From Thalia democratica (taxonomy: Eukaryota): DNA of 64,000 nt. Of this stretch, positions 5,061 to 44,768 are shown piece by piece. The stretch's first letter is position 1; every line of letters starts with the position of its first letter. The notes under the pieces are model-generated. The model made no database searches. It had not been told where the DNA came from and saw nothing but the letters and a program-made list of their open reading frames with translations. Both the position numbers and the translations under genes were made by a program. The stretch is from positions 77,872,001 to 77,936,000 of the forward strand of contig OZ241827.1 of assembly GCA_965202585.1 (NCBI GenBank), read 5' to 3'.

Positions 5061-5070
5061 AATAAATAAA
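5061..5070 (+). terminator. Putative polyadenylation signal of unit A (overlapping AATAAA x2)
   Basis: aataaataaa about 70 nt after the TGA, conserved in unit B. AATAAA is common by chance in this composition. Confidence 0.45.
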
Positions 5071-6415
5071 AGTTTTAATGAAAGCAGCTTGACGGAAAGC
5101 CTTTTAATTTTTGCTGTGATTTGAGGCTTCATTTTTTAATTACTTTATATTTAAAGCTTACATTTTGACATACAATAAATTTACCTTTTCTAAATAATTT
5201 CTCAGTTACCTTTTATAAATAAAATAGCGTTTTTGTTACTAAGTACTTTTTTCTGTTGTTCAGTTTTTTTAATTAGTTTTTTACAGTAAAGTTACTAAGG
5301 TACTCTCTAGTTTTTTTATCATCCTGTTAATTCAAATAAAAGTGCCTGGAAAAAAATTTCAAATATTCAAGAAGTTTGAATATGTGGGTATTTGTTAATC
5401 GAACATGAGTTTATGTTATATGTGTATTGTGACTGTTTCAAAATTGTGATGTTAAACAAATAAACATAAATCATCTAAATAGTTTTTTATTTATACTGTA
5501 AGTCTTTTGATTTTTTTTTAGTTGTTTATATGTTTAACACTTGATAACGAATATTAAAATACCTAACTGGTTTAAGCTTATAGGCATATTTGAAAACTGC
5601 ATGATTTAGGTTGAACATTATTATAATTTTATTTCAGTGTTAAATTTTTATAAAACAACAATTAAATAAATTGTTTTAATTTACTCTCAATAAATTAAGC
5701 TATTTTATACTCTTGTTTCAATTTAAATTGAAGTTTAAACCACTTTATGTTGCAAGTTTTCTTTTGAAAGTAATAACTGAACATAAACTTCTAAAATCTG
5801 TTCAAACTCATTAATATTAAGTCGCTAGAAGACTCTAAGGAAAAGAAGAATGACTTTTGTTTTTTTAATTTAAAGCACGTTTTGAGACTAAAAATATTTA
5901 TTTCAAGTTTTCTGAACCCTTAATTCAAACACTATTGGCTAATTTTTCAGTTATACTTGGTCGATTTCAAAATACATTTATACTGTCAAACTATGTAGTG
6001 AGAAATAAAACATTGATATTCTTTCGGTTTGCACTTAAACTAGTTTGACCTTTTGGTTAGTTCGTTTGTTATGCTGTAAAGTTGAACCCCTTTTGATCTT
6101 AAATAAAAACTGTCAAATTATACTTTGATTACTAAAAATAATTTTCGAACTGCAAAATAAATTACTTGAATATTGAAACTAGTAACATCTAGTACCAAAG
6201 TGTTTAAAATCAAGATTTTAAAACAAACTAAAACTTTTATTTGGCTTTGCTATACGTGTAACACAGTTATAATCGTTTTATTTCTGTAAAAAGTTCTTTA
6301 TATTGATTGTCAAGAAATAAAAACCAAAATAACCTTTTTGTTACCTGAAAAAAAGACATCTAAACACTAACTTAATCACATTATTAACTTTTAAATACGT
6401 TGATTAGAAAGTTAG

Positions 6416-8562
6416 GTTCCATACGCAATTATAACGTTCTAAAGTCTTCTTGGAAGAATTTATTTATAAAAAATATCAAGGACTTTGATGGTTTATCACA
6501 AGAAACGAATATAAACATGTATAAAGAATCGAAATGGTTAGTTTATTTTTGTTACAGTTTGAAATGTATATAGGAAAAAACTAAATAAACATTAAATTTC
6601 TACTTTTTTGTTAAACCCAATTAATTTTTTAAATGGTTGTTAATAATAAAATTTGTGTTTCATGATATGCTAAATATTACTTTTTTTAATTTTTAGTACT
6701 ATAATTTAGTGATTAAGTTTTTTTATTGCTATTTTGTAATTAAAGTTTTTTAAACTTTTTATTCACTCTTTTTTTAAAAAGTTTACCTGAAATGTTTTCG
6801 TAGTTTGAACTTTTATTTAACTTTGCATTCAACGCTTTGATTATTATAGTTATTTTTTTCCCAGAACCAAAATTTCTGAAACTTAACTATAAACAAAATT
6901 AAACTTTACAATCATGACGTAGAACTTAACATGCTTAAAAACTTCTAAAAGTTTGTGGTTTCATTTTTACTTAGTAAATAGACATTTGAACTTGAATAAA
7001 GTTTTGTAGGAGTGTACTTTGTACAATTATTAAATAGTTAAAAAAATGAAAATGAAACTAAGTCAACTTAGTATGTAGATAATTTTAAAGACTTTGAATT
7101 TCTAGTAAATAAGAGATAATTTGCAATTATTTAGCAAACAACTTATTTTTCGACAAGTTTAATTTTTAGTAAAATTTTAGTAAACATTTTAAACGCTAAA
7201 ATTAACATTTGTTTTTTTTTTGATACTACGCTTAAAATGTAAACTTTCAAAACAGAATGAAATTCTACTCATTCAATTGAAAGCTTATGAAAAATGCGAG
7301 AGAATTTATTTGAGAGAAATTAAAAAAAGTAAACGAAGTGAAGCATAACATACTCTGCCGGGAGATTTATGATTGTAAACTACAAAGAACAAAATATGTA
7401 TCAGTATTCACGATGTCTTTAATTAAACATTATTTATTACAAAGTAAACGTTCGAAGTTTGGTTTAATCGACTTAAATATAAAACGTGTCGTTCTTTATA
7501 AAAAAAATATGTTTCTATTTTACAAGCTAAAATAATTTTTTTCTCTCAACATCATAAATTAACAAAACATTGTTTTATAAATAAACATTTTAGACTTTCT
7601 CAAAATAAGCATGTTACACCATAAGGCTTAAAACTTCCAACAATCTCCTAAACCTTTTACTAGCACTTTAATATAGTTTTTTAAACAAATGTATTTTTTA
7701 TCAAAGATCTAAACAAAGCAGACAACGTTCTGCATGAGTGAGTGGAGTCGAACCGGTGCAATAATCGGTAAATTAACGGGAGAAAATCCGCAGAAATCCC
7801 ACGTTACTTGCCAGATCGTGGATTATAAATCTAAAAGCTGACTCACTTATTAAACTGTGGGTGGCGTGATCGCTTTAATTTTATTAAATTTGCGCACGAA
7901 ACAAATTTACTTCGTTTTTTAGGATCAGCAGAACATAAAAAGTGCGTAGGTCAAATATGATATTTTAGATGATAGAGACCTGAAATTTTGAAATTGCTTA
8001 CAAAAGTTTGTTTAAATACCGAAATAAAATTAACGGTCCTGGAATGAAAGTTTTCACTTATTCTAGTAACTACAACTGTCAAGGATTATAAAGACAACTA
8101 GCTAAAATTTCATTCAGAAAAGTTTAGTGCTGACGTACTTTAAAATTATTTCCATCGTTTATTGGTTGCATGCAAGCGATCAGACTCTAAACTGACCAAT
8201 GGGGTATTTCTTACAGCGCAGTATCAAAAGGAAGCTTAGATGAAGACACTCTGTTTGTGGTGGACAAAGTTAGTGGGTCAATTAGATTAATGGGTCGTTT
8301 AGAGGCAAGAGTTACAGGCTAAGGATAAGAGCAAGAGATTTTACAGGGAAGAGCACTCAAGCCAGACTGGTTGTCAATGTGTTGCCTAGTAACCTTTGTT
8401 CGCGTAATGGCAATATGAAAAATAAACTGACCATGATAAATGTAATTTAAATAACTTCCCCTGGACAAGTGGTTGGTACCATAAACACTACTAGATCTGA
8501 TGTTGTTTATGACATCATAGATGGTTCGGGAAAGGGAGTTTTTAGAGTGTATCGATATACAG
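6416..8562 (+). pseudogene. Heavily decayed cadherin exons at the 5' end of unit B (about repeats 6-10)
   Basis: Exon-like 6416-6536 reads ...KDFDGLSQETNIN. About 6865 reads PKFLKLNY. Exon 7722-8562 reads TTFCMSEWSRTGAIIGKL, VKDYKDN*LKFHSEKF, SIVYWLHASD, FVVDKVSGSIRL, SYRLRIRARD and YDIIDGSGKGVF..YTG across several frames, with many stops. Confidence 0.7.
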
Positions 8563-11500
8563 GTTGGTAAAAGATTGATTAAAAGAAAATTCTAGTCCTA
8601 AAATAAGTACATACTTTAAAATTTTATAAGAAAAAGTTAACTTTTAGTATTTTAACTTTATCAATTGTATTTAATGTGAATAACTTTTAATTTGAACTTT
8701 TTAAATCTAGTTTTTACTATTATGGACAAGTTATTTTCAGTTTAAAATGTTTTAGTAGTATCATAACATGGTGTGTATTTTAAATAATAACTAGCCTGAT
8801 TTTTCTTGTTTTCATAGTTAATATATCCTCTTTTTATACTTTTAAAACTGTCTAAGGTTCAAAGAAAACATAATATAAATTTTTAGTTTTTATAAAAATT
8901 TTGCACATAATTTTAAAGTTAGAACATAAAAGATTTAATTAATTTTACATATAAACATAAAATCCGAATTTAATTAATTTTTTAAAGTTATTTTATTTTT
9001 ATCTGACAATCAAAAAACTTTCTAAAAAAGTTTTTAAATTTTAATTTTTTCAAAACCCAAGGTTTAAGTAAACAAGTTCAGTTGAATTTAATGAATTTTT
9101 GTTCAAACAAAACTTAAATAATTGTTTTGGAATTTTATATATTTCTTAAACAGTCAAACAATTGTTTGATACGTTTTGTTGAATCGTGACTTGTTCATGT
9201 TTGCATGTTTTGTTTTTCATACAAACAAGCAGTAATTGCATACCATACATTTAATCTTTAATTGTTTGTAAATGTTTATAAACTATTGTAAAAATTTCCA
9301 ATTCTCAGTATGTATAAACGTTTAAACTACCATAACATTTTTATACAATATTTATTTTAACAGTTTATTACTAACAAAACTATGTTTTACTCCTATACTT
9401 GCATATAGGAGATCCTCAGTTGTTGTAAATAGATCTGAAAAATATTTTTTGAACCAATGAATGAAAGTTCCATACATAGCTAAACAATAAAATTACATAA
9501 AAGTTTTATAAGTTTAAAGACAGTGTAGTTATATTTGTTAAATTTACTTATAAACAGGGAAAGTATTTTTTTGACATACAAAAGCTTTCAATGTATACAT
9601 ATTAATAACTTGTTTAAACGATCAAGAAATTCGGCAAAAACAACTACTTATGCCTTCTTATTGAAGATTATCGGTTTAAGTAGCAAAAAGGAAATTTATT
9701 TTTCTGAAAAGGATGTGCTCTATAAAGCTTGTTTATCACTAAACTTGGTTATTACGTCACAGTAGTGCCCTTAAGCTGCAATAGTAATTTCTCCTAAGAA
9801 ATTTATATGAAGCTACTTAATGAAGTGAAACAGTTATGATGCTTGATTTTTCTTACTTGAATAAAAAGCTTATACAGACATCCTTAAAAAATATATGTTG
9901 TACAAGCATGTTAAATGTTATTGTTTGTCTACTGTCTAGTTTTATCTGAAAGCAGTTATGTACTTATAAAACAAGTTTAACTATAACTATATTTTCATCG
10001 TGTTTCGTTTTTCTAAAATAAATAAACAAATTAAAACACAAACTTATTTTTGTTCTATGTTTAAATTTTTGGATTTTATTCTTTAAATATCAAAAAACTA
10101 CTTGAGGTTATAGTCGTTCTCTTATCTTAGGAAACAACATAGTTTGAAAAAAATGGTTTCTTACTTATATTTAATGACAAATAAAGTGCAAAATTTCTAT
10201 CTATGTTAATCTTTAAAGTTACAGTGATCTTAAATCAAGACTATCAAGAAAGCACAGTTTTTTGCTATTTTTTCTTTATTAAGTTATATCTTCGAAAAAA
10301 GGTAAAATAAGGAAATTCTTAATCAATTTAAATGACAAATTTCTTTAATATATGATTTTAAACATTTATGAGAGAGTAATTTGAAGTAGAATTAGATTTT
10401 TTTTATTTAAGCCAAGTACTAAGATATTTTTATTTAATTTAGATGTTTTTACTTTTGTTGAAGTTTTAACTGCTTCATGAGCAAGTAATCTTGTGTAATT
10501 TAAAGAAAAAAGACAAAAAAGCATAAGTTGAATACTAGTAAAAAGATTCAAGAAAGTGCTTTACATTTGCTCTAAGTTTAAATTTCGGTTGAAAAATTTA
10601 CAAAGAAGAATTAAACAAGAATAATAACAACAAAAGAAATAAACTTTACCCGCTGTATACACAAATAAGTAGAATGGTAAATACTTGAAGCTTGTTTAAT
10701 TTACACAAAAGGTTCTCGACAGTTTATAAGTCTTTGTGCCAACAAAAAAAATACTTTTTATTTCAAAAAGAGCAAGAAAATAATAATAGGGTCGGGCATG
10801 AGTCATATCTTTTGTTTAGGAAGTTGAGTTTGTACAACGCAGATTCTTAATTTGAAAGTAAAGAATAAATTAACACCTTATTTTCTCCCCCTTTTTATAG
10901 TCATACTTAGTTGGGTTTTAGCTCGCTTTTGTTGTTTTTGTCTTGGTATGATTTAAATAAAATTTAAAGTCTTAAGTACATATACACAATTATTTTAATT
11001 CTAAACAATTTAATTTTTGTAATACAACAAAAATCTTTAAACAATTTTTGAAAAACCATGTAGGGAAAGTACTCTATGTTGTTTAAACTTTAAATGACAG
11101 CAAAATATTAAGTCCCTTGACATTAAAAATCGGTCAAGTACATACAATAAGAAGTATAAAAATACTTGTCAAATTCTACTTTGTCACAAAAACTATCATG
11201 TTGAATTACAGCAGAGAAAATTTCCTCAAAATGACAGCGGGTTTGTATACAAAAGTCTCATTTGTCAGCTGTTTTCTTTTATGCTGCACTTGATTTTAAT
11301 TTCAGATAACAAGCAAAAACTAGAATTTTAACTTCGGGCGCTTGTCTAAAGAACAATTTCAGTCAAATTTTAAGTTTTTCTTTCATAAAGTTCTTTCCTA
11401 AGTTAATGCATATAACTTATGTCAGATATTTGTTTTCGCAAACTATCTGTTTGAAGTAATTTTATATTTTTGTATATAATCCATCCATTTTTTATTAAAA

Positions 11501-12456
11501 ATCTTAGTATTTCTTCTGTGAGATTTACTTCACAGTTTCAGTATAAAACAAATAGCTGTAAAAACATAATAGTTAACTACACAATAATTATACGGTATTA
11601 GTTTCATTCAATATATTTTCCTTGAAAAATGGTTTTTGAAACTAAAAAATCTACTAAAATATACTGATTGTAAAAAATGTGTGAAAACATTTTATCAGTA
11701 ACATATGCATGCCCTTAATTAATTTGATACAGCATATGTTTTAAATGATCCTGTTCTTTTTTTAGTTTTACTGACATTTTAGTAATTTATCATTACGCCT
11801 GTAAGACTTAATTATGAACAGAAGCATACTGGAAATATGTTTGGACATGCTTTTTTAATTACCTTTTTGTGTTGTCTGGTTTAGGAATTACCTCCTATTA
11901 AATCATTTTGAAATTAAATTTTCTTCAATAAACATTTTTTAGCTTTATTTGTGTAACTTTTTTTTCAATTTTAAAATGAAATTTTATCAAGCTAAGTTTT
12001 TATTTTAGTTTAAAAGCATTTCAGTTTATGTATGTTTTAATATAATTATTTCGATATATTTAGCTAATATAGTACTATGACTGTTCTCTCTTTTTTAAAC
12101 ATTAATCATGATCTAAATATTAATCGATCACGTATTTTTTGTACTAAATATTAAAAAAAAACAATTTTTTCAGTTAAAAAAAATTATATACTTTTTAATA
12201 AAATATTTTTTACTACAATTTAGAAAATTTATAGAAAATGACAAAAAAAAACTAAAACTAATGATAAAAATTGTAAACAACTAGAATTAAACTGTAAAAA
12301 AATTGATTAAATACCTGTTGTTTTTGTTTATATAAAAAAAAGTTAAAAACTATTTTTTTAAAGTCGTGTTTTCCTAAACAAATTTTTACTTACTTGAAAT
12401 AAAAAAAACAAACAAACTTAAAAACATGTAAAAAGTAGACTTTTAATATTTTTCAA

Positions 12457-15400
12457 GACAAGTAGTTATTGCTCGATCATATGACAGAGAAATGGAGAAA
12501 TATTATTGGCTGACAATAGCATCACGTGATAAGCAGGGTTCATATCTATCTGAAGACTACATAAAAGTAGCAGTGACAGTTATGGATGTTAATGACAACT
12601 ATCCAGTTTCTGACCAGCCAAGCTACAATATCTCGTTAGTTAAATAGTACATGTTATGTAATAAATAAACTAAATTACTATTAAAAGCTAATTGTTACAA
12701 AAGTTTTAAAAAAAGTACAGTAAAATAAAAAAATTAGTGGAACTTGTTTGTAAATATGATGGTCATTAACTTTACGTTTATTACAAAAACTTAAAGTATT
12801 TTAAAAACTACAAAATCTTGAATGTTTATATATGAAAAGTATAATAAAATTTATTTTAAACGTTAAAGCAAATAGTTGTAAAAAGTAAATTAAATATATT
12901 TAATTACAGTGTGGATTCTGGAACACCTGTTAACACTCCTATATTAAATATACTAGCATCTGACAAAGATGAAGGTTTAAATGGAAAGTTTACATACACT
13001 ATCTTGAAAGCAGAAATATTTAAAATAAACTCTGAAACAGGTTAATTTCAAAAGTATTTATGTGTTTGTTTACTATTTTGGAATTACAGAAATTTTGTAA
13101 AAAAAAAAGTTTATTGAGCTAGTGTTCAGAAACATTAAAGAATTAAAAATTAAATTTTAAACTAAAAATGTGTTATGCATTTAGTTGCTATAGGTCTATT
13201 GGAACATCTTTAATATAACTATTTATAAAAATCTATAAGTTAAAAAAAAAAATAAAAACTGTTCATAGTTTTATATTTTAAGTTCCAAAAGTTGTTTTGT
13301 TTAATATTAGATAACCCCTTAGCTAATATCTGTTTTGTAACGTATGCATCTAATTTTTTGTACTACTTATAACTTTTATTGTTTATTAGTATAAGTTATT
13401 TATAGTTACCGTTTAAATAATGAGTTTGTTTGTAAAATTCTATAGATTGTAATAAGTATTAAAAACTGTAAGTTTAAGCGTATGTTAAAAAAGATCCAAG
13501 CGAAACGAATTCACTGGAATATGTAACAATATTGGAAATCGTAGAACATTCTTAAATTTAAAAAATAACTTATATCAAGTAACTTTTTTATGTAATTAAA
13601 CTTCAACTTGTTGTTGTAAATCCAAATTAAAAAAAAGTTATCATTTACATTCAATTAAAGGCTAAATCATTAGCGGTATATAATTAAATACATTCTCAAA
13701 TTTTTTTTTACAGTTACTGCTGATATATTGTTAGGAAATTTACGTAGTAAAATTTAGTACATACGTCATGAAGTTCAACGTGACGTCGAAATTTTTATAA
13801 GTGGTTTTTTTGTCATTTTAATTGGTTTTTGTCTACTTTTGTATGTACCTAGCTGAAAAATGTAGTCATGTAAAGGTCAAAACGTTTGTCAAAATGGTAG
13901 GTATGCTAACGATAGTAATTAGTATTTAAACTTAAGACATATAATACACTTGTTAAGTACACTTACAAATAAAACGTTCTGCTAGAGCTATAACGAATTC
14001 GGTTACATCAAAAAAAAAAGTTTGATTGAAAAGGTACTGAGTTTTACTCACTTAAATCTGTTTTAAATTTATATTTAATTAAACGTTGTTTCCTTTGTTG
14101 TACATGAAAAATTAGAATTACTAACAAAAAAAAATATATATTTTGATTCTTTAACAGAATACAATAGTCAAGTTGTAAAATGTTAACAAGATTTTAATAA
14201 AGTCTCAAAGTTGACAAAACAAAACTTATATGACCTGTAAGTCACAATAAAAATTAAATTTACTTACAATACCCTGTGGGTTTATAAAAGGAAGCCAAAT
14301 TAAACAATTGAAACCGCTCTCACAGAAAGTGAGCTAATCCCTATTTACTTTTACCGTTTAACTTAGCTAGTCAAAAGCTATTTTGAATGTCTTTTGTTAA
14401 TCAGTAGCGCGTAGAAGTAAAAGGATGACATTTTAATTTACGTGCGATTAGACATATAAAAAGTCGCGGTCTCTATAAGAGCTAATTCCAACCGGATATT
14501 AATAAAGTTTTTAAATTTAGTTTGTCAAATATAATTTAATATAATACTGTTAAATTGCAATAAGTAAAATTTAAAAGATTTTTAATAGTTATCTTAAACC
14601 AAGTCTATAGTTTGGTGAAACTGTTTATTTTTATTTTGAATAAGGGGTTTGTTTGATAAACTGATGTATGGCTGGTTTATTTTATTTCAAAAGCTTTAAA
14701 TTAATATTTTAAAACACATTTAAAGTGTATTATATTATTTTCTAACTTCAAATATCGTTTTTGCTTTAAAAAATTTAAAAATTATCATTTACACAAATAA
14801 GAATTTTATAGTAAAACTAACTTTGATATAGTTTTGGTTATAAAAATGTTTACCTAAAATGTGTTCCACAATAGTGTAAAAAACTACTTATATATATAAA
14901 GTAAAAATAATACACATACCTGTTTCAGTAAATGCGCATAGGTTGTACTTAACACTTATAAAAATTACCTTCAAAACATTAAATTGCCATAGAAACAAAA
15001 AAACCGAAATAAGTTGTAAAATTGCTCATAATAGCCAAGAGTTTGTTTACATTCACTAGGAAGATCAAACGCAGTTATACTGCTCATTTAGCAATTATTT
15101 GTTTTAAAGCAACAATGCTTTGTGAAAGAACTTGTTTTGATTTGAAAGCATCAATCTAATTAAAAAAGAAAATATAATAAAGTAGTAATTATTTCCTGTT
15201 CATTTGATCCCTACCAATTATGCAAAGCAAAGGTTAATTTTATGAGCAAGCATTCTTAAATGATTAATAACTTAAGTAAAGATATTTGCAAAAAGTATAT
15301 AGTTCAGCAACTCAAATATAAAAAAAAATCTGATAAAAAAGTTATATTAATTTTATCCAAGATAAAACTTATCGAAAAATAGATATACTTTTTTTTCTAA

Positions 15401-18400
15401 CAGAGACTTTTATTTAGCATATTGACATTTTTTAAATTTTAGAGAAATATCTGCTTTAAACACTTACAGTCTTTTATTTTGTTTTATTAAAATGCTACAA
15501 AAATGATATTTTTTTTAGTTTTTGAATAAGATAGCAATTGCTTGTGTTACTTAAGTTAAATTTAATTTTTAAATGATGTTACATAACAATATTTGTTTAA
15601 TCTTGCTTTGTGTATTGTCTCAACTATTGTTACGAAATATTGAATGAAGCTTATAAATAAACATAAAACTTTATTTTAAATAATCTTGTTTGTTCAAGTA
15701 ATCATTATTCTTCTGCAATTTAATAAAATCACATGTTTTTATTATATACGAGTAAGGATTGTCTATTCAATGAAACACGTCAAAATACTTGTGTAAACCA
15801 CAATTACTTTAAAAATCTGAAGTTCATCTGATAAAATAATAAAAATAAAATTAGAATCTTTTACATTTTTTGTTGGTTGAATTAAAACATAAAATGGGTA
15901 ATTTATCAACTAATGTTATTGAAATGCCAGTTATGTAGATAAACAAGTATACTTAACTCCTAAATAACAAAACATGTCTTATGCACTGAATTAACCTCAA
16001 ACTAAATGCAGCAAAACATATAATGATTGCTCTCAAGTCTAATACTTGCGTTTAATTCTAATTTTACAAAGTAGATCTTATTATCATTATTTTTGTCAAA
16101 AATATTTTTTAACACCTTATTAAATACAAGAATAAACTTGTTGTAATTCTAAAGGTAAAAATTAAAACATTTTTATTAAAAATGTTCTGTCATAAAACCT
16201 ACATTTTGAAATGAACTTTTATTAAATACGTTGTCAAAAGTTTTATACAGACTTTTGCAATTGATTGTATCCTGTATTTTTATGTTTTTAGTAATCAATA
16301 ATACTAAAGTTTATTTGAAAACTCATATGAACAAAATCTTTCGAACTATTTTACGAATTGTTTGATGTGGTCAGACTTTGAATTTTCATTTCCTTACAAC
16401 AATATGCATTTGACAGCAAAAATATACAAATTTGATGTTACCAGCAAGGTGTTTTAGTTTTTAATTTAAAAGATATTATAAAAATAATACTTTAACAGCT
16501 ACTTGTTTGTCTTAATTATTTGAAATATTAAGCTTACTTAACAAAGCAAAGTGTATGTGTTTAACATCAAAATAAGTTTAAACTAGTCTGAATAACTTGT
16601 TTAAAATGTAAACCTAAAAAAAAATAATTATTTTGATTAATTTGTTTTTCTGTGATGTATAATTTATAAAATTGAACAGAAACTTCGTTAAAAAATCGTT
16701 TTTACTAAATTGTTAAAATACTGACTATTACTGTAAAGTTCATAATATATATGTTATTCATTACATTCGTATATACAGTAAAGTAAACGACTGTTGAAAG
16801 GAAATCTTTTAAAAGCTTCAAGTACTTTATTTTTCTAAATGGAATCAAAAACAAATAATATTAAAAAATAAAAACAATCTAATGAGTAATACACTTGATG
16901 TTATAACACAGTTAAAAAAAGTTGTACGACAACAAAAACAAATCAGTTAAGTTTTTGATAAAAATTTCTTGTGTTTAAAATAAAATTACAGTACGGTACA
17001 TAGGATAATAAAAAAAAAGAACAAATATAAACGTTCATGCAAAACTGTTACTTCTCAGCAGGAGACTAGTTCACAAAATATATTAAAATTTAGACAACTT
17101 GGGTGGTTACTTCAAAGGAAACCAAAAGTCTTAAAAAATTAATTTACCTATAAACTTTATAGAATTGTTTATTGTTTATTACCACAAAGATAAACAAATA
17201 ACGTAATCGTAGAAAAGTAATTTATCATAAATTGTTGTCTTATAAACATTAACCAAGTGGTTCTGTTTATTAACAAAAACGCTACCCTAGCTTATATTAA
17301 GATTTAAATAAACATAAGATTTTAAAGTATTAGTTAATTTTTATTACGTTTTTTCCTTTATATTAGCTTATATTACATAATTAAATTTATAGCATTTTTA
17401 AATGGAATTCTTTTTGTGCTTTTAAAACAGCTTAAAATATTTAAAGTTATGTAAATGAAAAACATCAAAAAAAGTATTTTTATTTTCACAGCATTCCCAC
17501 GCTTTGTAGTTCTGTGTGTTTTTACCGCAATTATGACGTAATTAAGAATATATAAATTGAATTTGTTTAAAGCCAAGTTTCTGTACAACTAAACAAAACT
17601 AAATGTAATTATGTATTTGTGTATTAGGATAATTTATAAACTACTTTTACAATAGTTTTAACTCTATTATTTAATAAACTAACACTAATAAAAATGAACA
17701 AAATGTTTTAAGACTAGAGTATACGTTAGGTAAATAATACTTGTATTTTTCATTTATTAATTTTTTTATAATTGACAAAGTTTAATTTTATTTACATTTA
17801 TACGTAGTTTCTCTATAAATTAAAAAAAGACAACGTTTAATAACTAATAGAAGAAATAAGAATGTTAATTAAAAATTAGTTTATTTATTCAAATGTTTAA
17901 TTCTTAATGGTGTAGTGTATAACTAAATAAAGAAGTAATTCTTAAGTTTAGTATAAAAAGTAAACTAAAAATTTATTTGGTTTTACTATTTTTTAACCGT
18001 TTTAGATTTATTTCTAGGTCAAATTTACACTGCAAAAGAGCTGGTACCAAATGTACTTGATGGATTAAAACAAATTTCGTTCGTTGTAAGTTTTAATTCA
18101 AATATTCATGAAACTATTAATAAAAATTAGTCTAAACTCAAGATCTTATAATGTAATATGACTCAACTTAAAAGCACAAGTTTTAAATTTTAATCTTTAT
18201 TTAGTTTTGTGATGATTTCTGAGGTTTTCAATTTAAAAAAAACTGAACGTAATTTTTTTATAGCTGTGTCGATAGACATATTTATTTATCTTTAAAAGAT
18301 ATATGTGTGGAGTATCTGTTGTATCTTAAAGTAGTTGTTTTGTTTCAAACTTTATTCAAAGTTTTGATTGTGTTTAAAATTGTAAAGATTAAACAACATA

Positions 18401-27030: not shown

Positions 27031-27168
27031 GTACGTTACAAATGAATTAAAAAACTAATGTCAACATAATTAACATAAATCAAATAAATTTAGATTTATC
27101 ACTATACTTAAGTTTTATTTAAGTTGTTGTATATTTAAACTATTAACAAATAAAATCTAAACTTTCAG

Positions 27169-33100: not shown

Positions 33101-36100
33101 TTAAAAATAGATTTTCATTCGATGAAAGTACTGGTTAGTAAAACTTTAAAAGTAAACCAACAGTTCTATAACTATAATACTATCTAAATATATTTTTTTT
33201 AGGAATAATTTATGCGACTGAAAGTTTAGACAGAGAAGAAAAAGATAGCTACCACTTAAACCTTCAAGTTAAGTACTCGAACGATTTAAAAGTGCCTGAT
33301 ACAGGTAAAAAAAAAATTAAAAACAACTAGATTAATTAACCATTCAAAAAAAAACGAATTATGTCTTACTCAAACTTATTTTCTAGATCTTTATAAAAGT
33401 GTTAGATGTGAATGACAACTGGCCAACATTTACAAAAAGTCAATTGAGGGTTCGAGTAAAAGAAGATTCGGTTGTGGGAAGCGTTGTTTATCAATTTGTT
33501 GCATTTGATGCTGATATTGGTTTGTTTTTTGTTATCAGTTACAACTACCTGAATGAAAAAATAAACTTAGTTTAAAACAAAAAAAAAAACATTTTTTTAA
33601 GATTATTTTTTGTTTCCAAACAATAAATAAGTTTTAATACAAAAACACACATAGTATTTTATTTTAATTTCTTTAACTAACATTTTAGGTGAAAACTCTC
33701 AACTGAAATATGCTCTACAACGTCACAGTTTAGATTCAGTTCCTTTTGAAATTGATGAAAAACATGGTTATTTGATATTACAAAGACCCGTTGATCGTGA
33801 AATTAGAGACAAATACCTTTTCAACATTACTGTTAGTTAATTTTTTCTTGAAATTCATATAACTTTAGTTACAATTTTAATAAAGTTTCTTAAGCAGTTA
33901 AAGCTACAATAGGTGAAGTTTTATTTTGTCGACTAGCTGAAGAAAATTGGCAAACATGCTTTGATTTTCAAACATAGAAAAATATTGTTAACTCTATACA
34001 CGAGATACAACTATAGTTTTACTATAATTCTTTTTAAAGGTAAAAGACCAAGGGATTCCAGTTAAGTCAACATCAGTTCAAGTTAATTTAAGAGTAACAG
34101 ACGTGAATGACAATGCTCCTGTATTCAATCAAACAAGTGTTAGTTTTCAGTATTTAAAATGTTTTATGACTAAAAATCCGTCCACCGTTACTTATTTACC
34201 ATAAATTTTACTTTACAAAGAGTGGTGTGCTTTACTCTAACAAAATACAAAATTTAATAAAGAAACCTTTTAATTGTAAAACTAATATTTATCGACTTTT
34301 TTTTTCAGTACAAAGCTGAGGTTAAGGAAAGTGCCAAAATTAGCCATCTAGTGGCAAAAGTTGAAGCATTCAGTTTAGACGATGGAGTAAATGCGGATTT
34401 GCAATACCTCATTGTTGGAGGAAATGAGCTTAACAAGTTTCAAATCGACAGTAGATCAGGTATAAGAGAATGACTTAAAAATAGCTACTTGAATCATTTA
34501 TATAGTAACCACATTCAAATACAACTTTCATTCAAATACAGGAGAAGTTGTTCTTCTTGATGAAGTGGATTATGAGGTGAACAAATATTTTGTGTTGACA
34601 GTCCGGGCGCAGGATCTTACAGATGACCCACTTATGAGCGACACTTCTCTTAACATACGTGTCATTGACGTCAATGACAACAAACCTACTTTTAACAACA
34701 TCAATTTTCCTGTGAGTATAAACTGTTTGAATAAAAAGGTTTAAATTAAAAGCTAATGTTTTTTGTCTTTCAAATTAAAGATATTCGAAAGTCGACCATT
34801 ATTTATTATTTTGTTAAAAAGTTCAAATCTGGTCATAGTTCGTGCTAAAATCGTAATTTAGATTCAGTTTTCAAACAAGTTGTTAATTTCAGATATTTGT
34901 CAACGAAGATGTCATTGATGACGTCAAAGCAACAATAACCGCTTTTGACAAGGACCAAGGCGCAGGGGGCGAGGTCAAGTACTCGTTGCTAAGCAACGAA
35001 GCGGACCAGCTGCCGTTCCAATTGGATGAGGACAGCGGTCGGCTGTCAGTGGTCGAACCGGGTCTCGACTTTGAAGCCCGCCGTTCGTACGCCTTTGAAG
35101 TAGTTGCCAGGGACAACGGAACTCCTTCCCTAGCAACGAGCGTCGACGTCGCTGTCAAAGTGAGAGACGTCAACGACTGTCGACCGCGGGTGGTGCTTAA
35201 GAGTTTGCATGACAACGTTGCGTTGCGTTGTCAAAGTGACGTCACGACAAAGTGCACTGCGAGCGTGTCGGAAGCAGAATGGAGAAACGTTTTTTCGGAG
35301 GAGGGCATAGTAACGGTAGGGGCGACGGATGATGACGTTGCCAAGGGAAACGCGGCCCCTTTTAAATTTTATCTCGACTCACAACTTGCAGGTTAAATAA
35401 CTTGTTTGTTGTGTGTATACATTTATTTAGCTCAAACTTATTTATATAAGCATTTCAAAAAGCCCATTTCAACTTGTTAGTTAATGTACGGTATCTCTTT
35501 TTATACATGTAACATAATTAAAAAAATTTTTTATGAAGAAAAAATTAAATTAAACTTAACCATATTCATTTAACAGGTGAATTTGTTTTTAATGACAAAA
35601 ATGTGCTGATATCAAACAACCCGTACGAAATAGAAGACATTTTATCAGATAAAGCGGCTAAAACGTTCCATTTCACCATAACTGCTACTGACAGTGGAAA
35701 TCTCGAATCTTTGCCTCTTTATTTAGAAGTTGTCATTTTGAAAGAAAGCAAGTATCCACCGGTTTTGATCTCTCAAAAGATTCAAATTATGACTACTGAA
35801 GGTTTGTCCAAATATAAACTAATTTCGAAAATAATAAAAGGATTTTATTATAACAACCAACATGTATACACGAAAAGATATATTAATAATTTACCCAAAC
35901 TTAGCTACCTTTTATAATTATTTTACTTACTTGAATATTAATTATTCGTCTTAAACTAGTTTTTATTTTTACTGTTCTGTTTCAGATTACTTCAAAGGAG
36001 GAGTGATATCTTCAAAGCTGTACGCCACCGACAAGGACCCCCACGACTTGCAGCGGCTCACCTTCAAGATCGACTCGCTCGCCGACTTCGAGTCGTTTAC

Positions 36101-39100
36101 GGTGAACCCCCTCACCGGCAAGCTGTCGGCGACCAATGGCGTGCGAGGTCGCCACAACGTCACGGTTGGCGTCAGCGACGGCAGCAGGTACTCGACGGGC
36201 CGGGTCGCCATCGAAGTGGTGAAAATTTCAAAAGAGTCGATTCAGAGTTCGGTCCAGGTCACTTTCGAGGGGATTTCCCCAGAAGCGTACCTTTCGACGG
36301 TTCACGGCAAATTTTTAGCGGCCCTCGGTGACATTCTTCCAAGGGGTTCGAACCCCGGTGAAAATGTTGAAATTTTGTCCCTGAAACGCTTGAATGATTT
36401 CAATGCGCAGCTGGTGTTCAGCGTGAGGTCGCCGAAGCGTGACGGCCAGTACCTGAAAGTCGGCCGCCAGCTGAAGGACTCGCTGCCGCTGCTCACCGAG
36501 AAGGCGGGGGTGAGGGTTACGGACGTCAGGGGGGAGGAGTGCGACCTCGAGTGCGCCCACGAGTGCCGGTACGACGTAGTTGTGACGTCATCAGGGGAAA
36601 GTCCCATCACCACGAAAAAGTGGAGCTTGCTGACCCCTCATTGGTTCAATCGCGAGGAGAAGTGCGTGTGCCGGAAAGGTCACGCGGGTGTGAATTGCGC
36701 TTCCGTTTGCGCTGGAGTAACGGACGTGTGCGAGGAAGTAGGCGGAAAGTGCGAGCTGGACGCGAACGAGGTGCGAGGCTACCGGTGCGCGCAGAAGAAC
36801 CAAAGAAACAGCGCAGTTTCTTTCGGGGGAAATTCCCTGATCGAGTACAAGCTGAACAACCCTGAAGTGTTCAGTTTGTCGCTGAGGTTCAGAACCCGGC
36901 AGCGCGACGCAAAACTGCTGGAGGCCGCGGAAGAGTCGGGAGGCAACTTGGCGCGCGTCAGCGTCGACGAAGGGAAACTGAAGCTGGAGTTCGCGTGCGG
37001 GTTGGACGGCGGAAACATGCAAACCATGGAAATGAGCGAGTCGGAAATGAGCGACGGAAACTGGCATGACGTCACAATCGAACCCATTTCCGACAAAGAT
37101 TGCGCTTATAGGTATGAAGTTTTTATTTTAGTTACTATTCAAATTTATTTGCAAAATTTTTGTTGTAAGTTCGTAAAAAACTTATGCTTGTTACTAGTAA
37201 GATATACTAAGTGATAGTTTTCTGGCTTATAGTTTTATTTTAGCTGCTTAGTCTTATTATAACAACTTTTATTAATGCTAAAACATAACTACAAAAGATT
37301 GCGCTTAGATGTATTTAGCTTTAGTTTTCTTTACTAGTTATTTAGTTCTTTATCAGTTAGTTTTATATGCTTTTCTTTGCTAACTGTTAAAAAGCATGCA
37401 TTGGATCTAATTTTACCAATCAAGTTACGACTAGTGATGTACCGGACCCACAATTTTGGGTCCGGCCGGACCCGGATCCGGACTTTTTTTTCAAACTAGA
37501 ATCCGGCCGGAACAGGATCCGGACTTTTTTTTTCAAATTAGAATCCGGCCGGAACCGGACCCGGACTTTTTTTTCAAATTAGAGTCCGGCCGGAACCGGA
37601 TCCGGACTTTTTTTTCAAATTAGAATCCGGCCGGATCCGGATATCAGACAAAAATGGCAATATCCGGCCGGACCCGGATAGTGAGTCCGGTACATAACTA
37701 GAATAAACTAGCCTGAGTCAGAATGAGGTTTTTAAAAACTGAAAAAAAAGAACTTTAATCTAATGAGAAGTAAAACAGCTAGCCACAAAGTTTACAAATT
37801 TAGGTGTTATTTACAATTAAAAATCTGAAATCAAATTCTTGAACAAAATACACTAGAAAATTACAAAATATTGAAAACTGGATCAGCTCAAACTCATTCA
37901 AAATCTAAAAGAAAACTTGCCTGAGTTTTTATAAAGAACTAAACTAGCCTGAGGCAGTCAAAGATTTTCTAAAATTCCCAAAAATTTTCAAAATAGCAGG
38001 GTTGCCACTGTTTAAGTCAATAAAACTAGCTAGAGTGAGTATAAACAAGCCTGAGTCAGAATGAGGTTTTTAAAAACTGAAAAATTACTTTAATCTAATA
38101 ATCAGTAGAACAGCTAGCAAAGGTTGACAATTTGGTAGTAAAGTTGTGGACTGATTGTGGTACACTTAAGTTATTAGTACTACTCATCATAATTAAATAC
38201 TACCTTATTTAATTAATATCTAACAAATACTAAATTCTAACTGAGACTACTTTCTATAATCAGACAAGACAGTTTTGAGTGATGAATCTTTTATATAAAA
38301 CACAACAAGAAATACTAGCATATACAGAATTATTAATTACTTTGGTAACACTTTAAAAACTGGAAGCTATTTAAATCTATATCAAAAGACATAAAACAAA
38401 AAACTAAAAGTTAAATAAAAATTTTAGTAAGCAAGAAACTGTAAAATTTTTAATAAACTATTAAACTATAAACCTGGCTTAAATATTTAAACAATTAAAC
38501 ACCTGTTGAAATATTCACTTTTAAGACAAAACACTACTTACAATAAGCATTCACAAAAACGTTCAAGATATTTTGTTGCTTCAAGCTACACACCAAACTA
38601 ACTAACTGCTTACATATAAACTGCCTGTCATGTTCTGATGTTTTGTTGCATAAGTATTTAGTTTGAAACATTTCGTCATATGATTCTCATTTGCTCGTAC
38701 ATTCAACCGTATTAACTCTAAATATTCTCTGAGCTCAATTTTAAACAATAAATAATGCAAGTATTCATTCCAAAGTTTTCAATTTTACAACATATGTAAA
38801 GAGTTGCATTTCATGAAATGTTTATTTATAGTTTAAATGTACACAATGTAAATTAGTCACGTGTACAAAATGAGCCAATCACGGTAGGTGTTTAATTTTA
38901 ACTGACGAAAATGACTCTTATTAATTTTCACAGGGTTTGTTTTTGAAAATATACTTTTCAGTATGCTCTTTTTTACTAACTAGATCCGGTTCCGGCCGGA
39001 TGTCTGTTAGGATCCGGCCGGACCCGGATCCGGACTTTTTTTTCTAATAAGAATCCGGCCGGAACCGGACCCGGACTTTTTTTTCAAATTAGAATCCGGC

Positions 39101-42100
39101 CGGAACCGGATCCGGACTTTTTTTTCAAATTAGAGTCCGGCCGGATCCGGATATCAGACAAAAATGGCAATATCCGACCGGACCCGGACCCGGATAGTGA
39201 GTCCGGTACATCACTAGTTACGACATGTTGTTGTTAGTAAACATTTGCATGTACTATATATTGCTATATATTAACTATAACTAATTTTGATTATTCTAAA
39301 TAAATTTTTACAGGTTGGTAGTAGACAGTAAATACGAGGCTACAGGAGCATTGGGTGAGAACAAAAAAAGAAAGTTGAAATTTGACAAACTTACACTGGG
39401 AGGATTAGATAAAAATAATGATGGTATCATTGGATGCATTGAAGAAATTAAAATTAACCAAATTTTAATTCAAGATCTTCTTCATTACAATAAATTGAGA
39501 ATTACTAAGAAACAAGAAGTTCTTGATAGGTTAGTTTCTGTTTCTATACTCTTTATACGTTAGAAGAATATATGGTTATGCTAAATAAAAACTATACGAA
39601 ATTCCTACTATGTTTTAAAAAAATGTATAAATCTAACTATTTCGATGCAACATAGACATTTAGTTTTAATAAGATGAATTTCATTGAAGTATCAATAAAC
39701 AATATGTTAAAATCTACCTAATTTTTCAGATGTAGCATGGATATTGGGTCTTGCGTGAATCATTTTTGTTACAACGGCGGTAAATGCGGACTAGACATGT
39801 CTTTAGAGGGAAATTCCCCAATATGCAAGTGTAGTTCGGGTTATGCAGGGCCTGATTGTCGCAAAAGGAAGGTTTGTGAAGACTTGCCGTGCAAAAATAA
39901 AGGAATTTGCCATTCACAAGCTGTTGAAAGTTTTAGGTTGGTGAAATTTAAAATAGTTTTAGTTATTTCCTCGAATATTCAATACTTATATTAATAAAAA
40001 AAGCTTAATCTGTTTTACAGATATGAACTTAATGTTTTTTATGAACTTGTTCTTTGCTCACTTTTAGCAATTAGTAGTACTTTACTTATGGGATATAAAA
40101 ACCATTAGTTTTATCATTATCACAGATGCGAATGTAAAGAAGGTTTTGGAGGAGAATTTTGTGACGTCATATGCAAGGAGGGGTTCACCGGAGTGAATTG
40201 TGACGTCATAATAAATAAGTGTTTCAGTTACGATGAACATTTTGCTTGCAACTGCTCTTTATCAAATGAAGGTAAGCTTTTTTACTATGGATATTTGCTT
40301 TGGATGTAGTAATATGTAACTACAAGCAACAAACTAATTTTGACTGCAAACATATTCTAAAATTTTTATTATGTAAAAAATTTGCTGCGAATAAACGTGA
40401 AATTTGAAGTTTTCATGAGAAATGCAAATTTTTTTTTTCATAATATGTAAAGTTTATTGAAATAAAACACTATCTTATCTTAAAAAGACGTTATTTACTA
40501 ATATTAAACATATATGCTTTATAAAAGCTTAAGACTTTAAATTTCACCAGCAGTATTATAATCAACTACCAAAGTATAATTTGTTTAATATGGATTCTTA
40601 AAGACGACTTTATTGCTTGTTTATTAAAACTAATCCTAATGTTTAAATAGGGATGTATTTTTGTCACGCAACATTTCTTTTTTTTTATGTCACGCAAAAA
40701 CTTACAAATCTACAATTTATCTAAAAGTAATAATAAGAACGTAATAAAATACTATTTATTAGCTGTATGTGTTAAAAAATTATAAAAAAGTAGCATAAAA
40801 AGTACGTAGTTGAACTTGTAAAATTCATAGAAAAAAAGCTTAAACAATTGTAATTGTTTAAAATAGCTTATAAGTTCCAAGTTTAAAAGTTTTAGTTAAA
40901 AACTTCAAATCAACAAAATAATAATGATGCTAACAGGTTGCAAAACTATCCTAGAAAATCAGACTAACGCGAAGAAATCATCATTTCCTTATTTAGTCCT
41001 CATAATTGTTATTTTAACCGTCATAATCGTTGCCACCATAGCAACTGCAGTCGGCTGCTACGTAAGAAGGAGGCGAGGAAAAAAGATGCGAACCGGAAGT
41101 ACTATTTCCACTAAAGAAAAGTTTTATTTGACACAACTGAAATACAGAGAAGGTTTGAATGGCTTACATTAATTAATTTTCAATTTTGATTTTATATAAG
41201 TCTTTTAAGTTTAATTCATTAAAAGCAAAAATATTAACGATATATAAAATGTTTTTTTTTTTTCAGATCATTCTTCAGATGGAAACCAGTCGATTCCAAA
41301 GCCACCGATTCCTGCAAGACCGGTTGATTATCAGAGATGTTCAAGAGAAATTATTGACAGCATGGTTGAACAAGTAAATATAATTATTATTATATATTCA
41401 GTTCTTAGTTTACAGTTTGCATACTTCTAATTACTACAATTTAACTATTTAATTATCTGTTTAAAAATAAATTTCAGTTGAAAACCAACAATGAAATCAA
41501 CAATTTATCATTAAAAAAATTAATTACATGTTTTAAAATAATTTTTCAGGAGCTAAAGAACAGGAAACAGTCAAATGACGTATTCGACAAAAGTATGACG
41601 TCATTCCAAGGCAATGAAAAATTGACTTCATACCAGGATAATGGAAAGCTGACGTCATTGGCTTCCGATTCAACTTCGTTTCAGAAAATTCCCATGTCTT
41701 GGACTGACTATGAGCACAATCATGTAAGTAATATAATAAATAACACCAAAAATATTAGCTCAATTTATAGTTTTTATTTCTGTTAATTAATTATTATAGT
41801 TCACACCTGTAAACTGACACAATGGTTATTATATTATTTTAATTATAATAAAAAAAATACGTTCTTTATATTTTATAACTATGATTAAATAAAATTTTAA
41901 GTTATTGTAAGCTTTCACTGACTGTTCATTAAAGCTATAATAATTTTTTTAAGTATATATCTAATTTCGTTTAAACGAAATGCTTCAACTAATTTTTAAA
42001 CCATCACAGTTCAGCGGAAGTATATCTGGTTGTTCGTCTTACAGCAAAAGAACTCCGATCCCGTCTGCGAAATCACCGAAACTGTTCACCAGGATTCCCA

Positions 42101-44768
42101 GATTCCAGCAGCAGTCAGTTCACAAAGTAGCAAGCAAGCAGTCCATCGCAGAACAGCGTAAGTTTTATAACAGTAGTCGAGTGGTAGTCAGGCGTAGACT
42201 GATTCTTTATTAACTTTTTCAGTGGACTTTCTTGTTTTATATATTATTTTAATACACTTTTCTCTGTATTTTTAGCAGTGTTTTAGACTCTAATAATAAT
42301 AATATGATTTTTTCGGAAAACATTTTAAAAAATCCAATAGTTTTTTTTAAAGCTTTTTTTTATTTGAAAAACAAGTTAGTTCCTTTTTTTTTTAAATTCT
42401 TATAATGTAAAACTTTCTTTAAGACTTGATCTCTTATCATGTATAATTGTTAATAAATTAATTCAATCACAGTTCTAAAATATTAACAGTATGTTAGCTA
42501 GACGTAGATATACACTGATTTTGTTTTAATTTTTCAGTAAACCTTTATAATTTTTAGATTTTCAAATTTTTAACATTTATTTTACTTTATTGTATCTTTT
42601 GAAGAAATTTTTGATTTGTAACGTATTTTTATTACAAGATATACTTACAAGTTTAAAAATATTTAATATCTAATTTCAGTTCTAAACAAAGTTAAAAAAA
42701 TATTAATTTTTGATTAGAACATCTTTAAAATGTAAATTTTGTAACTTTGTTTTTTTTCTCACTGTTTTTTCAACTAAAATTTGTTTAACCACAGTTTTGT
42801 AATTCTAAACAGTTGGAAGAAAACCAAAAAAATTGAATTTAGCAGAATTCAACCGTAATACAGGTCTATAAATAAAAAGCTTGGTTATGGTGATTTTTGT
42901 ACAAACTTAGCATGTACTCAAAAACGTGGTGTTAATCATTATAATAAAATAACTTCAACTGCTTTTTCTGAAATTATCTGAATTTTGAAAGTTACTTGTT
43001 TATGTTAACTTTCAAAATCTTTAACATGAATGACTTGTTAAAATTACATAAAACATTGAAAAATAATTTTGATTTCATATAGTTAGGTATATCCAGTTAT
43101 AAGCTTTTACTTTATGTTTCAAAATTTAAGTATAAGTATGTCAACTATTATTATCTATCCTGTTATACTTAGTGGTTTTACATCTCTTGTACTGTTGTTT
43201 GTTTCTAAGTTTTATTTTAAAACTTTCATCTAAATGAAAAATTTCTAAGTTTACCATGGTTATTAAAAAAAAAATGTGTTAATTTATCTGGCTTCAAAAA
43301 TTTTAGTTTTTATTCTAAACGTATTTTTTTAATCTCAAATGATAACACTTACTTTAACTGCCTTTCATTTTTAGCATGTAAATTATTAAGTTGTGATGAA
43401 TTTTATTTTCGTTCAAAACAAAAGTTATTAATGGTTTTATTAGGTTGTTATTTTGTAATTCGAAAAATAACTTGTTACTTATAAATCGAAACTTCAAAGT
43501 ATGTTGATAAATCTCATAGCATGTGGTTTTTGCATGTGTATTATCATGTAACTTGCATTTATTTCAGTATGTTATATCAGGTTTTTCTATACATGTTTAT
43601 TTTTTTTTTACAAGAAGTTGTTTTATTAATTGCATATTTTGAAAAGAAAATTAGTTATCTAAATAATTATTAAAAAGATTCTTAAGAACCCATTAACTTT
43701 TTAAACTCAATGATAAAATGTTAACTTTTTATGTTTAACTTAAAAAGAAACTTTAAAAAAGTTGTAAAAGTTTCTAAAACTCAATTATAAAATTTGACGA
43801 ATCCTTTTTAATACTTAAATAATTTTATTCACCAGATTACGCATGGGACGTTTCTGATTGGATTAAAAACAACTCGTCGGCGGCCAATCACGTTCCTGAA
43901 CACGTGACGTCAGTACCAGTGAGGCTGAACAACAGATCCGACGGTGTTACGTCATCAAACAATCGCGTGACGTCACATTACAACTTGGCTGGGAGAAAAC
44001 CGAAAAGGAAGGGGAGAAAATGCAGCGACGCTTCCACAACAGATTCAAAACTGGTTTGTATAACTTTATAAACTTAAAAAGTTTTATAAGTCTAAAAATA
44101 TATATCTAGACATAAAATAGACAATTGAATTGGGAAAAAACTTAACATTTGAAGCTTTTATATTATAAGTATATAAATATTTACGTAAGTTACAAGTCAA
44201 GATCATTAAATGACAAAGTAATTATTTATTAGTTTTGATTCGAGTATTTATTCTTTCAAACCAGATACGTCATCCGCAAGACGACGAAAACTCCCAGTAT
44301 GACGTCAGTAGCGAGGTTACGACGGCTGCCAGGCAACCCGGGCGCTTATTACGTAGCAACTATGACGTCACCAACCCCCTCTTTGAACCTTCAAACCTCC
44401 CGCCATCCGTTTCCATGGAGCACGAGCGCTTCTCATTGGACGAAAAAATCTCTGAGGCCTCGGAGGATTTCTATGACGACACGGAGTATGAAATTTCCGC
44501 TCCGATGCCCACCGACATTATGACGTCACTTTTGGAGGGCGAGATGGAGGTGGACATGCCGACTCCGGCGAGGGCGCGCAAAAACAAGTTTCACCCCGAC
44601 CAGTACCTGCCCGCCGTCGTCACCATGGCAACCAGTTCCTCGTCGTCGGTAGACAGTGACGTCACTGACCAGTTGCTTGGCAACCAGCTGCAGATGTCGT
44701 CGCTTTCCGACTTGGAGGAAGATGACGTCAACAATTCGTTGATGTTACGTCATAATGACAACGCTTGA
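27169..44768 (+). CDS. FAT1: Unit B 3' module: stop-free exons for about cadherin repeats 19-34, EGF, laminin G, EGF, TM and ICD (one probable frameshift at 33304/33387)
   Basis: Exons 27169-27327, 27444-27849, 28004-28215, 28517-28768, 28962-29109, 29264-29484, 29550-29736, 30076-30203, 30303-30444, 30751-30914, 31151-31214, 31441-31595, 31739-31896, 32147-32380, 32457-32637, 32710-32859, 32992-33133, 33203-33304, 33387-33519, 33689-33831, 34040-34138, 34309-34459, 34542-34711, 34893-35391, 35577-35801, 35986-37111, 39314-39529, 39730-39936, 40126-40271, 40937-41152, 41267-41373, 41550-41723, 42010-42157, 43836-44053, 44265-44768. All are GT-AG and all phases match except 33304 to 33387. Expression is unknown. 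Confidence 0.75.
35986..37111 (+). CDS. Large GC-rich exon: last cadherin repeat, linker, EGF-like domain and N-terminal part of laminin G domain
   Basis: Covers ORF 36003-37214 up to the donor at 37112. YATDKDPHD...VSDG, then CVCRKGHAGVNC, then VSFGGNSLIEY...LRFRTRQRDAKLL...DGNWHDV (LamG). LamG is completed by exon 39314-39529 (GIIGCIEEIKIN). Confidence 0.9.
37461..37640 (+). repeat. Subterminal 43-44-bp CCGG-rich tandem repeats, left arm (about 4 units)
   Basis: Unit gaatccggccggaaccggatccggac(t8-9)caaatta, containing the palindromes tccggccgga and ccggatccgg. Confidence 0.92.
37703..38135 (+). repeat. Dispersed direct repeat of about 95 bp (period 338 bp) in the core of the hAT element
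   Basis: ataaac(t/a)agcctgagtcagaatgaggtttttaaaaactgaaaaa...ctttaatctaat...aacagctagc at 37703 and 38041; partial third copy aaactagcctgag near 37941. Confidence 0.8.
39011..39150 (+). repeat. Subterminal 43-44-bp CCGG-rich tandem repeats, right arm (about 3 units), same orientation as the left arm
   Basis: Same unit as the left arm, followed by the same tail atatcagacaaaaatggcaatatccg...ggatagtgagtccggtac. Confidence 0.92.
40937..41152 (+). CDS. Transmembrane exon of unit B (A counterpart 1161-1376)
   Basis: Acceptor gctaacag; reads GCKTILENQTNAKKSSFPYLVLIIVILTVIIVATIATAVGCYVRRRRGKK. Confidence 0.88.

Follow-up and report, generated by a model that had tools for sequence, protein, structure and literature searches.

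Tandem arrays of partial gene copies are common, and the time for which each part of a copy has been out of use is rarely readable from one copy. In the human RCCX module (C4, CYP21, TNX), within class III of the major histocompatibility complex, ∼30-kb tandem modules that contain the 5′-truncated TNXA and the pseudogene CYP21A1P are reshaped by unequal crossing-over and gene conversion. Here we describe an array of related design in the tunicate Thalia democratica, in a 64-kb stretch of contig OZ241827.1 (assembly GCA_965202585.1, forward strand, 77,872,001–77,936,000; hereafter the window, in whose coordinates all positions are given). The only unit that is complete in the window, B, is a broken, 5′-truncated copy of a Fat cadherin gene. 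The first recognisable exon has long been dead, exons further along carry younger lesions, and the last 7.5 kb of coding sequence carries at most one lesion and shows purifying selection where a second copy is available for comparison.

The array resembles RCCX in that a duplication junction cuts a large gene, so that internal units hold a 5′-truncated copy, and in that exchange yields mosaic units; in RCCX, as would hold here under the explanation we prefer below, pseudogene and functional copy keep converting each other. It differs in that the truncated gene takes up almost all of the unit (38 of 40 kb), and in its 5′-to-3′ skew of lesions and its signal of selection on the 3′ part, neither of which, to our knowledge, has been described for RCCX. 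By analogy, the nearest counterparts of the array would be tandem segmental duplications that interrupt a large gene and undergo concerted evolution, with the skew and the 3′ selection as unusual details rather than marks of a new type of system. Searching the literature for Fat arrays in tunicates returned nothing relevant.

Like Fat1/Fat3-type cadherins, the unit encodes cadherin repeats in tandem, laminin G and EGF domains, a single transmembrane segment and, in its C-terminal tail, a conserved motif. The closest full-length relative among 1.84 billion proteins is Ciona intestinalis protocadherin Fat 1 (XP_018670260.2, P0006), to which B is colinear from Ciona residue ∼700 to the C-terminus at ∼30% identity. 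Unlike these genes, B has no signal peptide, is missing its first cadherin repeats, carries lesions and is repeated head to tail, whereas ordinary Fat genes are single-copy. The 1.84 billion protein representatives included no protein of the source species; the best match was 72% identical over 96 residues, and the next 40%.

A head-to-tail array of truncated Fat copies

Self-alignment showed the window to be a head-to-tail array, with 1–24273 aligning to 39781–64000 at an identity of 97% dropping to 92–95%, and with a period of ∼39.78 kb. Three units are represented, namely the tail of A, the whole of B and the head of C (Table 1). Units A and B can be compared in the tail only (1–4989 against 39781–44768), and B and C up to 24.3 kb.

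The gene in unit B was modelled with a purpose-written spliced aligner and a profile of 24 full-length Fat proteins, with introns, frameshifts and stops allowed. B covers this profile continuously from position 905 to the C-terminus, and its head exons between 12458 and 22990 cover profile positions 1086–1599 without a gap. An original prediction, made from the letters of this DNA alone, had described 35 open exons at 27169–44768. Our own spliced alignment recovers them, 7,548 nt in total, open throughout and with all introns GT–AG; 31 were found by the aligner (27169–41373) and the four exons of the cytoplasmic tail by separate enumeration. The latter (41550–41723, 42010–42157, 43836–44053 and 44265–44768) have strong splice sites, in a tail that is poorly conserved.

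Several features point to the Fat family. Pfam Cadherin matches fall on single exons, the unit is colinear with the 24-protein profile over positions 905–3540, and cadherin linker motifs lie 96–110 residues apart in the spliced product. Laminin_G_2 and EGF domains (both by Pfam), a hydrophobic segment and a cytoplasmic tail follow in Fat order, and a motif in the tail matches Ciona Fat1 residues 4470–4505. By domain order and colinearity, then, the gene is assigned to the Fat1/3-type cadherins.

The gene is not full length: homology begins at 8048, equivalent to Ciona Fat1 residue ∼700, and no Fat-like sequence was detectable at 6416–8048 by profile, Pfam or tblastn. Of the ruined 5′ end previously placed at 6.4–8.6 kb, only the exon at 8050–8566, which carries five lesions, is therefore recognisable as Fat. 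Unit B is a 5′-truncated, broken copy without promoter, signal peptide or the first ∼700–790 residues (∼7–8 cadherin repeats), rather than a working member of the Fat family. It resembles an unprocessed pseudogene in retaining 50 exons with GT–AG introns alongside disabling lesions, but it has not evolved neutrally over its full length, as its tail exons are constrained (see below).

For exon-by-exon comparison we used an apparently intact Fat gene of a related species, found on the marine metagenome contigs L001 (ENA k141_478538, 118 kb) and L004 (JGI24159J19872_10000499, 35 kb). These contigs have a GC content of 47%, and their Fat protein is ∼37% identical to that of B. Over profile positions 1674–4282 the two genes have the same intron positions and phases, at at least 24 introns, and with a single exception (exon 33203–33304) all differences in exon length are multiples of 3. 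The comparison ends short of the exon that matches 25274–25529.

Table 1. Mapped features, lesion load and divergence along the array, in window coordinates
Feature	Position	Strand	Basis
Unit A tail: EGF, transmembrane and cytoplasmic exons; stop codon 4987–4989	1–4989	+	Self-alignment with 39781–44768
Spacer between units; includes the earlier nominal start of B, 6416	4990–8049	+	Profile, Pfam and tblastn, all without matches
Unit B, only complete unit of the window	∼6.4–46.2 kb	+	Self-alignment
Dead first recognisable exon of B; cadherin repeat ∼8–9, Ciona Fat1 residues ∼700–883	8050–8566	+	Lesion-tolerant spliced alignment; tblastn colinear with next exon
Head exons 12458–12634, 12910–13040, 18019–18085 (weak), 19602–19702, 20065–20215	within 12458–22990	+	Spliced alignment
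Head exons, continued: 20415–20640, 21936–22036, 22216–22432, 22499–22596, 22756–22990	within 12458–22990	+	Spliced alignment
32-bp deletion, B only, removing exon end and donor; C retains the sequence at 61782–61813	22038–22039	+	B/C alignment
TAA stop, B only; C reads CAA	22348–22350	+	B/C alignment
Five exons: 25274–25529, 25598–25831, 25935–26223, 26324–26749, 26876–27030	25274–27030	+	Spliced alignment
3′ part: ∼16–17 cadherin repeats, laminin G, EGF repeats, transmembrane segment, cytoplasmic tail; stop codon 44766–44768	27169–44768	+	Spliced alignment, Pfam
Doubtful junction; strong donor leaves exon 1 nt too long	33292–33305	+	Comparison with relative
Sole long intron of the 3′ part, 2.2 kb	37112–39313	+	Spliced alignment
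Transmembrane exon, product ...FPYLVLIIVILTVIIVATIATAVGCYVRRRRGKK...	40937–41152	+	Translated spliced model
Unit C head	from ∼46.2 kb	+	Self-alignment
Counterpart of the dead exon in C; all five lesions again, at 47880, 47922, 47975, 48094, 48230	47831–48348	+	Lesion-tolerant spliced alignment
C exon with private lesions: 4-bp insertion, TGG>TAG, ∼90-bp deletion of exon end and donor	60215–60446	+	B/C alignment
Lesion load: 0.52 kb coding, 5 lesions in B, all old and common to C	8050–8566
Lesion load: 0.85 kb coding, 0 lesions in B	12458–21935
Lesion load: 2.0 kb coding, 5 lesions in B	21936–27030
Lesion load: 7.5 kb coding, 0–1 lesions in B	27169–44768
Neighbour-unit divergence 3.1%	1–11311
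Neighbour-unit divergence 0.98% (B against C, 51092–59227; 8 kb)	11312–19447
Neighbour-unit divergence 6.2%	19448–22814
Neighbour-unit divergence 3.1%	22815–24273

Old and young lesions

In the exon at 8050–8566 the reading frame is stopped at 8099 and 8448 and shifted at 8141, 8193 and 8312. It had been noted that several 5′ lesions are common to B and C; in fact all five of this exon lie at the same sites in C. The two units also share a TGA split codon (8565–66 plus 12458) behind an AAG acceptor, which is probably what had been listed as a lesion at 12456.

Downstream, five previously listed lesions were each identified: the deletion at 22038 and the stop at 22348 (Table 1), and stops at 25291 (TAG), 25438 (TAA) and 26884 (TAG). 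The TAG at 25291 is in frame with donor 22991 and acceptor 25273 (product YSIVKGNNAGV*RIDETTG), and the TAA at 25438 is in frame inside its exon. The TAG at 26884 stands 3 codons past a strong acceptor, and the relative's exon begins at the same point. Alignment with normal penalties masked 22038, 25291 and 26884 by way of weak alternative splice sites; they were recovered by hand, by a lesion-friendly run and from the relative's exon boundaries. The lesion reported at 19704, by contrast, is a good in-phase donor (GTGAGA). The lesion-friendly alignment also proposed frameshift pairs at 27658/27689 and 32819/32838 inside open exons, which we rejected as over-fitting.

One doubtful phase mismatch had been mentioned in the 3′ part, and we locate it at 33304. 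Exon 33203–33304 has 33 codons and one extra G before a strong donor (ACAG|GTAAAA), and the relative has exactly 33 codons there. A weak donor (GTGCCT) at 33292, 13 nt upstream, would preserve the frame at a cost of 4 codons; unless it is used, the extra G is probably a real +1 insertion. Unit C has three private lesions of its own in the exon at 60215–60446, whose counterpart in B (20415–20640) is intact.

No in-exon lesion was common to the compared units within 12458–24273 or in the tails. Because the lesions of the first exon are shared and none is shared within exons downstream, B was still open from 12458 on when its first exon had long been dead. The first exon thus died before B and C separated. 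The exons from 12458 on were lesion-free in their coding sequence at that separation and gained private lesions later, in B only at 22.0–26.9 kb, and the last 7.5 kb of coding sequence carries at most one.

The young lesions of B are placed at 0.09, 0.10, 0.15, 0.16 and 0.26 of the 10.4-kb coding sequence 12458–44768 (and at 0.58 if the insertion at 33304 is counted). Uniform placement is rejected with five lesions (p = 0.003) or six (p = 0.009). With the substitution spectrum of non-coding DNA, the nonsense-mutation target is evenly spread along the gene (1.5–1.8 per kb), ruling out base composition as the cause of the 5′ skew. The polar decay that had been described is therefore significant in its direction, but its shape is stepwise rather than a smooth gradient. 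Overlooked lesions at 27–45 kb would have undone the pattern, and the alignment gave 0–1 in 7.5 kb of coding sequence, compared with 5 in the preceding 2.0 kb.

Purifying selection on the 3′ exons

The tail of unit A is likewise without a disabling lesion (0 stops and one 3-bp in-frame indel in a codon comparison with B). The A and B tails differ at 32 of 1,669 exon sites (1.9%) but at 133 of 3,305 intron sites (4.0%), a ratio of 0.48 (Fisher p = 5e-5). The exon changes comprise 17 synonymous and 15 non-synonymous, for an omega of 0.23 by Nei-Gojobori or ∼0.34 against a spectrum-aware expectation (p = 0.002 against neutrality), and the single indel compares with 8.6 events expected (p = 0.002). 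The tail sequence that can be compared between A and B thus shows purifying selection. In the head, B and C (18.9–24.3 kb) differ by 4.2% in exons and 5.2% in introns (p = 0.19), with omega ∼0.5; these exons are compatible with near-neutrality and show no significant constraint.

From the A–B intron divergence of 4.0% and the nonsense targets, we calculated that ∼9 nonsense mutations would be expected in the 3′ 7.5 kb of B had it been neutral since the A/B split, and none is seen. The 3′ part was under purifying selection until very recently. The original prediction had offered two models, one in which unequal crossing-over with a functional gene refreshes 3′ ends and one in which a short 3′ module is expressed. 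Both assume longer protection of the 3′ end than of the 5′ end, which is supported by the constraint on tail exons, seen in divergence, omega and indels.

Block-wise divergence between units

Likelihood-ratio segmentation of the pairwise unit alignment, together with sliding windows, divided the divergence between neighbouring units into blocks with breakpoints near 11.3, 19.4 and 22.8 kb (Table 1). As divergence falls in such sharp blocks, sequence must have been exchanged between units, and the 0.98% block is the footprint of a recent exchange between neighbours. Within the stretch that B and C share, all private lesions are in the 6.2% block; the B stops at 25291, 25438 and 26884 lie beyond that stretch. 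Unit B is accordingly a mosaic whose segments differ in history. Head-to-tail units of one length, diverging from their neighbours block by block, are what concerted evolution produces.

Proposed renewal of 3′ segments and its alternatives

The explanation we prefer, held with somewhat less than even confidence, is that B is a dead, 5′-truncated Fat copy whose 3′ segments left one or more selected genes recently, by unequal crossing-over or gene conversion. Units would exchange sequence by both processes. A crossover with an intact, selected copy would swap everything 3′ of its breakpoint, and the nearer a site lies to the 3′ end, the less time it would spend outside a selected gene, while the junction-proximal exon would never be renewed. 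The probable +1 insertion at 33304, which would break B's own 3′ module, favours this renewal over use of the module itself.

Other observations weigh against it. The 64-kb window contains no intact full-length Fat gene, and 24.3–39.8 kb of B is without a second copy there. At 4%, the divergence between the tail introns of A and B is no lower than that between heads, and the tails thus do not look fresher. Had a single functional gene been the donor, at least half of the path from A to B would have been neutral, from which omega should be ∼0.6 or more and one of the tails should hold several lesions. An omega of 0.23–0.34 has P = 0.08–0.18 under a true value of 0.5–0.6, and the lack of lesions in either tail has a rough P of ∼0.02–0.05 under one functional gene. 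A single functional donor gene fits these data poorly.

The crossing-over model of the original prediction is thus supported by the exchange between units, which it requires, and weakened by the missing donor and by tails that are no more alike than heads. We would add to it that the donor must comprise more than one lineage, either diverged alleles or several intact copies; several donor lineages are plausible in a highly polymorphic tunicate.

A possible but on balance doubtful alternative is direct selection on 3′ modules that are in use in several units, with the upstream exons left free to decay. Transcription might start from an internal or read-through promoter with spliced-leader trans-splicing, or an unrecognised upstream exon might supply start and signal peptide. 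Two lesion-free and constrained tails fit this proposal better than they fit renewal from a single donor, and the sharp step at 27030, from five lesions in 2.0 kb of coding sequence to 0–1 in the following 7.5 kb, also speaks for it.

The start of such a product is the difficulty. The first in-frame Met comes 319 codons past the last stop (26884), and none of the first eight in-frame Mets precedes a hydrophobic, signal-like stretch. A crude scan for a phase-compatible first exon (ATG, signal peptide and donor) found none upstream of 12458 or 27169, though it cannot exclude such an exon. With neither start in evidence a stand-alone product seems unlikely, and without a signal peptide the ectodomain of a Fat protein could not get to the cell surface. 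Furthermore, the 1 kb of coding sequence from 26884 to the first Met is free of lesions too, though it would be untranslated, and the probable insertion at 33304 would truncate the product of B. The earlier model of a short expressed 3′ module therefore gains from the constraint on the tails and loses from the lack of a start codon with signal peptide and from the lesion at 33304.

It is unlikely that the units, as truncated copies, stayed intact until recently and have since begun to decay at random, with the clean 3′ end owed to chance and youth. Only 5–6 young lesions enter the test, the exons of B at 12458–21935 are clean as well, and units are just 1–6% apart, all of which would suit so recent a beginning. 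But uniform placement is rejected against an even nonsense target, and tail exons diverge significantly less than introns, with too few indels. From coding length times divergence, moreover, similar numbers of lesions are expected in the 6.2% head block and in the tails, and 5 are seen in the former and 0 in the latter (binomial ∼0.03).

Less probable still would be a role for the units as alternative 3′ cassettes of one very large transcription unit, whose promoter, signal peptide and 5′ cadherin exons would come from a full-length Fat gene heading the array. Exon n would be spliced to exon n+1 of any downstream unit, with the shared phase of homologous exons preserving the frame. A 5′ lesion would then merely shift the point of entry downstream, selection would rise with distance from the 5′ end, and polar decay would arise at the level of RNA. 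The resulting Fat proteins would have one outer half and varied membrane-proximal repeats and cytoplasmic tails.

Clustered protocadherin loci, in which alternative variable exons are spliced to shared constant exons, would be the nearest parallel to such cassettes. They too have same-strand cadherin cassettes, and a shared part joined to alternatives would explain selection on incomplete cassettes. In those loci, however, a variable cassette consists of one 5′ exon under a promoter of its own and the shared portion lies 3′, whereas the cassettes here would be 3′ halves of 35 exons, each ending in a separate stop codon and presumably a separate polyadenylation site.

Least probable of all is an assembly or sequencing artefact, in which stacked haplotypes passed for tandem copies or homopolymer errors in AT-rich sequence were read as frameshifts: tunicates are often highly heterozygous, this genome is strongly AT-rich (27% GC in the window) and the lesion at 33304 amounts to one additional base beside an A10 run, but most lesions are substitutions to stop or deletions of 32–90 bp rather than homopolymer slips, five are identical in B and C, and three consecutive units that differ block-wise cannot come from two stacked haplotypes.

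An ancient dead exon, young private lesions and a selected 7.5-kb frame permit the segments of one unit to be timed. The array thus offers a good natural setting in which to measure how a working gene and its dead copies trade sequence through unequal crossing-over and gene conversion. Should the 3′ modules be expressed, the locus would be a new way to diversify a giant polarity and adhesion receptor in a chordate relative, with relevance to Fat/Dachsous signalling. For annotation, the units should not be called Fat genes, and their long open frame should not be read as proof of function.

Introns, base composition and repeats

Three introns in the head are 2.3–5 kb long (8567–12457, 13041–18018 and 23007–25273), compared with 60–350 bp for those of the 3′ part. 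There, the sole long intron (37112–39313) contains direct repeats of ∼205 bp at 37497–37701 and 39008–39217 (93% identity), which leave the coding sequence untouched. In the relative the laminin G exon is unsplit, so this intron is absent there. The intron at 30204–30302 is 99 nt long, in frame and stop-free, and its flanking exons read as one open reading frame, 30021–30497; because the relative has a 474-nt intron at the same position and phase, we take it as a real intron and not an insertion. No second Fat unit was found downstream of the relative's gene, in a stretch too short to exclude an array there. Rfam and tRNA scans of the window gave no matches.

Third-position GC is uneven among exons. 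It reaches 0.74 in the laminin G exon 35986–37111 (1.1 kb), 0.69 in the last exon (44265–44768) and 0.57 in the 499-nt exon 34893–35391, and most small cadherin exons are at 0.07–0.35; exons 42010–42157 and 43836–44053 also belong to this pattern. Intron GC is 0.16–0.32 throughout, and the GC-rich exons are the large ones. GC-biased gene conversion at exchange hot spots could produce such a pattern, as could an effect of exon size.

A nine-residue short repeat is present in the cytoplasmic-tail exon 41550–41723 (1771–1944 in unit A), which reads ...SFQGNEKLT SYQDNGKLT SLASDSTSFQ...

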